The notes under the pieces are model-generated. The model was not told the DNA's origin. It did no database searches and worked only from the letters and a program-made list of their open reading frames with translations. 64,000 bases of DNA. Source: Oikopleura dioica (lineage: Eukaryota > Animalia > Chordata). Position 1 is the first letter of the stretch. Every line of letters begins with the position of its first letter. A program made the translations under genes and the position numbers. The stretch lies in assembly GCA_907165135.1 (NCBI GenBank), contig OU015569.1, forward strand, positions 5,890,001 through 5,954,000, given 5' to 3'. Positions 42,565 to 45,500 of the stretch are shown piece after piece.

Positions 42565-45500
42565 TTAGAATAGACCGCAATCTTTCAGGTTGTTCTTGAT
42601 GATGACATCGGTGACAGCGTCAAACACGAACTGAAAAAAATCTTCCGTGGCTGAAGCTTAGATTGATAGTACCTGAATATTATTCGTGTCTGTGGCGCAG
42701 GTAAAGTGCGTATAGATCTCTTTCGATTCTTTGCGCTTATTGAGGTCTTCGAATTGCATTTGGATGTAGGCAGCAGCTTGCTCGTAAGTATCCTGACCTG
42801 GATTCGGGTTAAAGTAAGTGATGTTCAATCTCATTTACCTGTGTAGTCAGGGAAGCAAATCGTAAGGGGTGACTTTGAGATCTTCTTCTCGAAGAGATCC
42901 TTTTTGTTCAAGAACAAAATTATCGAGGTGTCGGTAAACCACTTGTTGTTGCATATCGAGTCAAAGAGCTTCATGGACTCGTGCATTCGGTTCTTAGAAG
43001 AAGTTTTTTGGAAGTCATTTCGAATTTAAATTTACCATTTCTTCATCTTCAGCGAGCACTAAATCATACGCGGATAATGCGACACAGAAAATAATTGCTG
43101 TGACACCCTCGAAGCAGTGGATCCATTTTTTACGCTCTGAGCGCTGTCCTCCAACGTCGAACATCCTGAAAAGGTGTTAAGGACATACATTTCAATTGAG
43201 AATAAAGAGTGACGTGACAAATACGAGGAACGAGGCTGAAAACATGCAAATCTATATTGAAAACATTGATGAGTTTCTTCTATGTTTCCAATCAGACAGT
43301 AAATGGGTTCTGGCGACAAATGATGAAGTTTGATCCGTCTGAGCGATCAAATTAGTTAGACTAAGATGACACTGGCTGACATTTTTACCGAGTTTATTAA
43401 AAATGATAACTCCTGACTGTCTATTTTTTCTGTGCTTGTGAGCGTGAAAATTTAGAAAAAAGGTGGTGAGGGTACTAACTTGAAGGTTAAATTTTTGTAG
43501 GTAAAGTTCATTTCCACGATACCGGTGGTTTTAACCCGGGTGCGGAGCACATCCCCTTCCGTCGGCACGTAGTCTTTTTGTGAAAGTCTTTTGAGGTTTC
43601 CCAAAAAACTATGCATTGAGCAATTAAGCAAAAATCATAACGTAAAGAATGTGCAGGGATTACACGCTCAAATCAGGAGCGAAATTCGGGAGTTGAAAAA
43701 AATATCCTGTTCGGGTCGAGACAACAAAACGATAAACAATACGATAAACGAAACGATAAACAATAAAAAAGACGATAACGTTGCATACTTGAAATGCAAG
43801 TCTTTGAATTCGAAATGTGTTTCGACAATGCCCGTCGTTTTAACTCTGCTGCGCAGTACATCCTGCTCCGATGGAATATAATCGGGAGCGCAAAGGCGCT
43901 GGATTGAATCCAGATAGCTAAATATTCTTGTAGATCGAAGCGATAGAGTTTTACGGGCACTAATTTGGTAGTTCTTTTTCATCAATCCCTGCACGAGAAG
44001 AATATTATCACTTACTATTGAGCAGAATCGTTGAGTTGATATTCGCGAGATCGACTTTTTTGGGCTTTCAATACTGGAAACGATAGAGATGATTATTTCT
44101 TATAATTCTTGAGTCGACTGATCAAAGCCCGTTCCTGAAGCACTGTTGGACGCCGTTATCCTGCCACAAGCGCCACATGCAATCGCCAAGTTCCTGTGTC
44201 ATTTCGCCATCCTCGAGCGTAGACGCCAGCGCAAACAATTGTCTAGCATCATCCTAAATGAATGATTTATCAAACCGCTGCAACATGAAATGCTTACCGC
44301 TCGTTCTGCTTCGGCAAAATTTATTTTCAGATTGCCCATGGCTTTCACAATGGCGATCATTGACTGCAGTGTGTTGCTGTATACGACGGCTTTGTATTGC
44401 TGACAATCTTCGGCAGAGTATCCATTTTCGTGGATAATCCTAAACGGAGATGGTAACTTTTGGATAGCAGAGCTTTTATGTGGCTTTTCACTGCTACAAG
44501 TTGTAGCCTACAAGACTGAACCATTCATTATATATTTTTTAAACTGGCATAATTTCGACTTGTATGACGTTTCTCTTTCACAGGTACAAAAATCGATGGC
44601 GCGTAGATAGATGGACTTACTTCATTTGTTTGACGATGGTGGACTTGCCGGACTCGCCTGCACCGAGCAGGAGCAATTTGACTTCTCGCGCCGCCTTGTC
44701 ATGGTCGTCTTTGAGCTTTTTGTCGATTTGCTTCGAGCGGTCCTTTGCATTTTTGTCGTCGGCGCTACACCACATGTTAAAAGAAGCGAAATAAACCTCC
44801 GCCTCCGGAGTGTGTCGTTGTTTATCGGCCCAGGGGGCACAAATCGATCAAATATTCTTCACCGCTGTTAAAAAATGAAAAATAATAATTATCCGATGAT
44901 CATCCGTAGCGTCATTTAAAATTTTCTCTAGCTCTGGGATCGTTTTTTTTTCTTTCTTGCCAAGAATAATCACATAAATGGCGCGTTTCTATTTCGTCCT
45001 CTTTCTCTTTTTTTTGCTCGGTCATTATTGAAAACGCGCCGCTCAGACAGCAACTGATAAAATATAAATTCTAAAGCGTAAAATGAAAATTGATCCCGTG
45101 TCTTTTTTCGAAAATACCGAGAACTTCTCTAACGATGTGCCTTGGTGCGGCAAGGGAAAAGGTGTGTCCCTGTCAATCGTGTCGATTTGCGTGCCCAACT
45201 ATTCCCAAGTGACGGACCGGGGGCGAGGGTGAGCAGCAGCCTCTCATAGCGGCTCTTTTCGCGCTCTCAACAACTCCTAGTCTCTCTTTTTCTCTCTGCG
45301 CGAGGGGATCAATACAACAATCCGCCTTCAATTTAGGGTGACTTCATCGCTCCCAAAAATGGATCACACAATGGATTACTCTATCTACTGTTGCTACTGG
45401 GACTTACACCATCCATATCCGACGGAGGAGCTGAGGCAGGCCGAAGGAAAAAATGGTGACTAGGCTGGACCTGCCCTAGGAAGGGCTCTCATGTGTAGAA

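Follow-up and report, generated by a model that had tools for sequence, protein, structure and literature searches.

Tandem copies of exon 5, probably spliced as alternatives, in a Gi-class Gα gene of Oikopleura dioica

A stretch of 64,000 nucleotides (nt) from Oikopleura dioica (contig OU015569.1, positions 5,890,001 to 5,954,000; hereafter the window, in which all coordinates are counted) carries on its minus strand a complete gene for a Gi-class G-protein α subunit, in which the exon encoding the switch-I region is present twice in tandem. Exon-by-exon mapping places the coding sequence between 44775 and ~42568. Taken as one explanation, it is in our judgment quite likely that this is the tunicate Gi-class α subunit gene (preGNAI), that the duplicated exon is the homologue of exon 5 of the human GNAI genes, that the two copies, A and B, are used alternatively with one copy per mRNA, and that B is a faster-evolving yet selectively maintained variant. 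One pre-mRNA would then yield two mRNAs, each with either A or B, and the gene two Gαi isoforms, the exon 5 copies being normally mutually exclusive. The predicted outcome is that one tunicate Gi gene provides two α subunits with the same C-terminus and catalytic core, presenting other surfaces at the end of the helical domain and at β2/β3.

An earlier note on this DNA had placed copy A at 43917-43789 and copy B at 43608-43480, both of 129 nt, with equal phase and intact AG/GT boundaries. The present mapping on the minus strand agrees in all of these respects, and in-frame translation reproduces the peptides that had been given for the two copies. Copy A lies between ...tttAG and GTatgc, and copy B between ...catAG and GTtagt. 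Both are composed of one base, 42 codons, and two bases. The terminal TA of exon 4 (44016-44054) is completed to a Tyr codon by the first base of either copy, as TA+C or TA+T, and the final AA of either copy is closed to a Lys codon by the initial G of exon 6 (43036-43165, 130 nt), the remaining gene being in frame with both. The introns around the pair are intron 4 (43918-44015, 98 nt), the A-B intron (43609-43788, 180 nt), and the B-6 intron (43166-43479, 314 nt), all on the minus strand.

All searches were run exon by exon. Matches to the Pfam family PF00503 are obtained with exons 1, 5A, 5B, 6, and 7, and the best PDB matches for both exon 5 copies are the G(i) α-1/2/3 subunits. The motifs of the Gi class are all present in the exon translations, namely the P-loop GAGESGKST, the switch-I RVKTTG with the catalytic Arg, DVGGQR, NKKD, and TCAT. 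The C-terminus, read from the six-frame translation, has a Cys at position -4, which is the pertussis-toxin site of Gi/o. The two copies are aligned end to end with residues 155-196 of human GNAI1/2 and cover positions 144-185 of the Pfam Gα profile.

At the protein level, A and B share 24 of 42 residues (57%, BLASTP E = 2e-19), and the remaining 18 positions differ. As the earlier note had observed, the catalytic Arg and the RVKTTG motif are kept in both copies; the core of switch I is equal apart from a Ser/Thr exchange at GNAI1 residue 177. Alignment to GNAI1 also bears out its statement that the differences lie at the end of the helical domain and in β2/β3. On GNAI1 numbering, they fall at 155-172, around αE/αF, at residue 177 beside the catalytic Arg178, and at 187-195 in β2/β3. 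The P-loop, the switch-I core RVKTTGIVE, switches II and III, and the receptor-facing C-terminus would be common to both isoforms. The segment composed of the helical-domain end and β2/β3 contacts Gβγ, RGS proteins, and effectors (Lokits et al., PMC5896119), and the A and B isoforms may differ in function. Since Go is absent from tunicates (PMC5896119), one may also speculate that the B isoform takes over part of the role of Go.

That copy B is a functional exon is suggested by the pattern of its substitutions. Between A and B, the proportion of differing synonymous sites (pS) is 0.91, i.e., saturated, and that of nonsynonymous sites (pN) is 0.29. Despite this divergence, B retains its open frame, its phase, both splice sites, and every residue that is invariant in Gα. 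A neutral copy of such age would have lost its frame, splice sites, and invariant residues. A JGI metagenome contig from a close lineage (L004), retrieved with a degenerate B-specific DNA pattern, contains the same gene from the final 13 nt of exon A and the adjoining GT onward. Exon B of L004 encodes an identical protein, with 10 synonymous and 0 nonsynonymous changes at 92% DNA identity. The probability that random placement over the sites would make all 10 changes synonymous is about 4e-7. Exons 6, 7, and 8 of the two lineages have DNA identities of 91%, 90%, and 85%, respectively, with 0 amino-acid changes, and the introns are 58-63% identical. Judged from these substitutions, exon B is under purifying selection.

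The rates of the two copies are unequal. The exon A protein is identical at 41-42 of 42 positions in four other lineages, where the synonymous sites are saturated. For exon B, comparison with L005, a contig from a more distant lineage, gives 29 of 42 identical residues and a pN/pS of about 0.3, with the exon intact, and pN/pS remains at 0.2-0.3 even among distant lineages. Copy A is the canonical, nearly invariant form and probably the default copy, and copy B is the divergent one.

The earlier note had proposed looking for the pair in other larvaceans and in ascidians, and it is found in both. Among the ENA/TARA contigs of more distant Oikopleura-like lineages (L005-L008), which were reached with the open reading frame (ORF) around exon A, two, L005 and L006, have exons 4 and A followed by a B-type exon. 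The latter is located 319-401 nt downstream of A, with the phase and the AG/GT sites of the window.

Three further contigs (L001-L003) hold an intact related gene of the larvacean Gi type (392-2359 in L001), the sole exon 5 of which is of the B type and is fused to exon 6 without an intron; exon 3 is also fused to exon 4. This exon 5 is 77% identical to B and 56% identical to A, and the synonymous sites between B and L001 are saturated (pS 0.85). As far as this gene structure tells, the B-type segment is competent as the only exon 5. Its fusion to exon 6 would be the expected trace of an intron loss that went through a spliced B-to-exon-6 mRNA copy. This gene, a paralogue or else an orthologue that has lost exon A, hints that alternative exons can be exchanged for separate genes and vice versa.

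A word search with the exon-B ORF returned two fragments only and no transcript of O. dioica, and the protein searches with the larvacean exons yielded, for the lineage of the window, genomic ORFs only. When exon B was used in a representative search, no closer B-type relative emerged. The same search returned ORFs from other organisms that read through other tandem pairs of Gα exons (P0003, P0004-P0006). P0004-P0006 represent three pairs of the GNAQ/GNA11 type, and in the one Gi-type read-through pair of this set the first copy looks degenerate (VKRTGIMEMAFQLQRP).

The ascidian counterparts emerged from a profile search with a frog GNAI2-like template and the larvacean exons, the top matches of which are vertebrate Gi2 and ascidian double-exon models. 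Just below the template stand the 397-residue "G protein alpha subunit Gi isoform X1" of Ciona intestinalis (P0202) and the "Gi1" of Phallusia mammillata (P0201, UniProt). Both read two exon 5 copies in tandem, in the order of the window, with an Asn at the junction of the copies, as AA+T would give. The first ascidian copy (LRSRVK) is alike to exon A at 34 of 42 positions. The second (LRTRVK) resembles B in having a Thr ahead of the catalytic Arg and in ending with ...LTF.

A maximum-likelihood tree built from the 42-residue segments unites larvacean A with ascidian copy 1 (support 86/85), and it recovers one clade of larvacean B-type exons (92/90) and another of the ascidian second copies (90/90). 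An approximately unbiased (AU) test rejects larvacean A and B as a single clade (p = 0.02). A clade of B and ascidian copy 2 is neither recovered in the tree nor rejected by the AU test (p = 0.28) with these 42 columns. The shared order of the two copies in ascidians and the grouping of A with the first ascidian copy suggest that the exon pair is as old as the tunicates, with one duplication before the ascidian/larvacean split; the tree lends weak support to this dating.

We have considered three other explanations of the exon pair. If B were a relic pseudo-exon that stays outside productive mRNA, the gene would make the A isoform only. Several features of B would fit such a fate, as it scores 46-50 bits against known Gαi proteins and A 60 bits, its Pfam score of 46.0 bits is just below the cutoff of 48.8, the pyrimidine tract at its acceptor is poor, its identity in distant lineages is 29/42 compared to 41/42 for A, and no B-containing transcript came out of the protein searches. 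However, B has kept its frame, phase, splice sites, and invariant residues over a time in which the synonymous sites between A and B became saturated, the exclusively synonymous changes relative to L004 (10 to 0) would arise at random with a probability of roughly 4e-7, and L005, L006, and L001 have intact B-type exons, with pN/pS of 0.2-0.3 across distant lineages. A pseudo-exon is in our view very improbable. Equally little credit can be given to a recent transfer of B from an L001-like B-type paralogue by gene conversion or exon insertion, in which case the divergence between A and B would be uninformative about their use. Such a source does exist in the B-only gene of L001-L003, and the larvacean B exons and the exon of L001 fall in one clade (92/90). 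Against this, the A-then-B order is common to the window, to L004, which starts with the end of A, and to the distant L005 and L006, the ascidians show the same order, and B and L001 are themselves saturated at synonymous sites (pS 0.85). We regard this origin as highly doubtful.

The third explanation, slightly less remote than the other two but still very unlikely, is that A and B are constitutively joined into a Gα protein of roughly 395 residues with a doubled switch-I/β2-β3 segment. With 129 nt, a length divisible by 3, A and B are in frame with each other through the Asn junction (AA+T), and the 397-residue Ciona "Gi isoform X1" of NCBI and Phallusia "Gi1" of UniProt are exactly such forms. 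The Gα fold, as seen in the GNAI1 structure, has no place for a second linker 2, switch I, and β2/β3, however, L001 holds a single copy, and the copies are alternatives according to Lokits et al. 2018 (PMC5896119). Automatic gene prediction, moreover, commonly takes up both of two in-frame tandem exons. We therefore consider the 397-residue models to be probably gene-model artifacts of the in-frame tandem exons, and a similar double-exon error is likely in the automatic annotation of the O. dioica genome. For annotation in general, this means that automatic models tend to take both copies, because 129 nt stays in frame.

Alternative use of A and B is thus the explanation that we prefer, and several points weigh against it. 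The Ciona and Phallusia database models contain both copies, a full-length O. dioica protein with A or B is not among the 120 profile-search matches listed, and the tree has 42 columns only, with clade hypotheses that were named after its inspection. In addition, three possible ways of enforcing exclusive splicing do not fit this gene. Control through the reading frame and nonsense-mediated decay is discarded, as 129 is a multiple of 3 and the inclusion of both exons or of neither keeps the frame. Steric hindrance is discarded with an A-B intron of 180 nt or longer, and incompatibility with U12-type sites is discarded as well, the donors GTATGC and GTTAGT being GT-type and neither of them U12-type. 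On balance, the earlier claim of tandem, functional alternative exons gains from the selection on B, the conservation in larvaceans, and the match in ascidians; its exclusive-use part, that is, alternative rather than joint splicing, is what we infer, along with the identity of the default copy and differences in RGS, Gβγ, effector, or receptor coupling.

A possible control of the choice between the copies was sought in base pairing between the introns. An 11-nt perfect complement is present between GTGCAGGGATT in intron 4 (43994-43984) and AATCCCTGCAC in the A-B intron (43661-43651). Stems of this length appear between these two introns in 7 of 1000 and in 7 of 300 shuffles (0.7-2%), and in any of the three intron pairs in 3-6% of shuffles. 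The downstream arm is located within a block that is conserved in L004. The candidate stem would loop out exon A, offering exon B to the donor of exon 4. Pairing between docking sites and selectors enforces mutually exclusive splicing in Drosophila Dscam, 14-3-3 zeta, and Mhc. The likeness of the window to these systems consists in the 11-nt complement, which is marginally beyond chance and has no equivalent beyond chance in the introns of L005 and L006. No competing selector was found for the stem, and the global intron-intron duplex energies are no better than those of shuffles. Another pairing, of 8 nt between the A-B and B-6 introns, was discarded, as it is at chance level and broken in L004. 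That the pairing of GUGCAGGGAUU (intron 4) with AAUCCCUGCAC (A-B intron) sets the A/B choice, the B-only gene of L001 then being a later subfunctionalization into separate genes, is unlikely in our estimation. If true, it would place a docking/selector-type mechanism, best known in insects, in a chordate G-protein gene.

The introns around the pair have some further features. Just after the donor of exon A, at 43723-43778, a 12-nt unit is repeated in tandem about 4 times (...GTTTATCGT... on the transcript strand), an array that is not kept in L004. A CTGATT(T/G)G motif is shared by the A-B introns of the window (43676-43668), L005 (332-341), and L006 (252-259), about 60-67 nt ahead of exon B; its CTGATT part in the window lies about 62-67 nt from the exon. 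It could serve as a binding site of a regulator or as a branch point at an unusual distance. Regulated exons are typically flanked by conserved intron sequence. The B-6 intron contains conserved islands in comparison with L004, namely an 18-nt perfect block, AAATTTTCACGCTCACAA (43455-43438), and a stretch of roughly 65 nt at ~43365-43300 with about 75-80% identity, the rest being about 60% identical.

The remaining exons, all on the minus strand, are exon 1 (44621-44775), which contains the start codon and the P-loop and opens with MWCSADDK..., exon 2 (44298-44439), exon 3 (44135-44253), exon 7 (42839-42992, 154 nt, with the NKKD motif), exon 8 (42673-42797, with the TCAT motif), and the last exon (~42657-42568), read in six-frame translation. 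The introns are short. The sizes of exons 5, 6, and 7 (129, 130, and 154 nt) agree with the structure of the vertebrate GNAI genes. The intron between exons 3 and 4 (44134-44055, 80 nt) has a non-canonical GA...AG boundary. The GA donor junction was chosen because the resulting peptide equals that of L001, where this intron is absent. An alternative splice from a GG donor (44135-44134) to an AG acceptor (44075-44074) would add extra residues. Among public data sets, only marine metatranscriptomes contain the stretch, which, like the short introns, the GA...AG boundary, and the tunicate character of the gene, is consistent with O. dioica.

The N-terminus of the encoded protein is unusual in that it does not read Met-Gly-Cys as in Gi proteins, the arrangement for myristoylation of Gly2 and palmitoylation of Cys3. 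The sole in-frame start gives M-W-C-S, and the B-only gene of L001 has a similar M-F-C-S (about 418-430), compared to MGC in Ciona and Phallusia. If the in-frame start at 44775-44764 is the true one, the myristoylation site at Gly2 appears to have been lost and Cys3 retained.

The exon pair is an already known feature of tunicate Gi genes. The earlier note had held that the known alternative Gα exons concern other regions or classes, which is incorrect in view of Lokits et al. 2018 (BMC Evol Biol 18:51, PMC5896119), who described exon 5 of preGNAI as alternative and mutually exclusive in all four urochordates studied. In their account, local exon duplications produced copies that are included one at a time, and GNAQ/GNA11 likewise use exon 4.1 or 4.2. 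The tree labels of that study name the four urochordates as vase tunicate, sea squirt tunicate, gold star tunicate, and "PelagicTunicate", the last of which we take to be O. dioica. Its exon tree file contains two Ciona species only, and the larvacean case is covered in one sentence (PMC5896119). The urochordate preGNAI exons 5.1/5.2 and the pair in the window have in common the gene class, the 129-nt exon for GNAI1 residues 155-197, the tandem layout, and the order of a conserved copy followed by a divergent one. For Ciona, Yoshida et al. are said to have reported in 2002, in Zool Sci, the splice isoforms CiGalpha-i1a/1b (Gi1a, Gi1b), and the Gi1 isoforms of Ciona are reported to be enriched in the CNS. 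The present analysis adds population- and lineage-level evidence that B is under selection in the O. dioica complex, the sharp difference in rate between the copies, and the B-only related gene, together with a tree that weakly favors one early duplication in tunicates and a marginal candidate for RNA pairing.

Two vertebrate systems are close to the pair of the window in different respects. Exons 7-8 of vertebrate GNAO1 (GoA/GoB) are also mutually exclusive duplicated exons that give two isoforms of the Gi/o class (PMC5896119), but they encode the C-terminal, receptor-facing part, whereas the pair in the window encodes switch I and β2/β3. Exons 4.1/4.2 of GNAQ/GNA11, found in coelacanth, gar, and teleosts (PMC5896119), encode the homologous segment (linker 2, switch I, and β2/β3) and are tandem and alternative like A and B. 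They belong, however, to the Gq/11 class, and the tree of that study indicates an independent duplication. Because the fish GNAQ/GNA11 genes duplicated the homologous segment independently, isoforms seem to have diversified repeatedly in this part of Gα.

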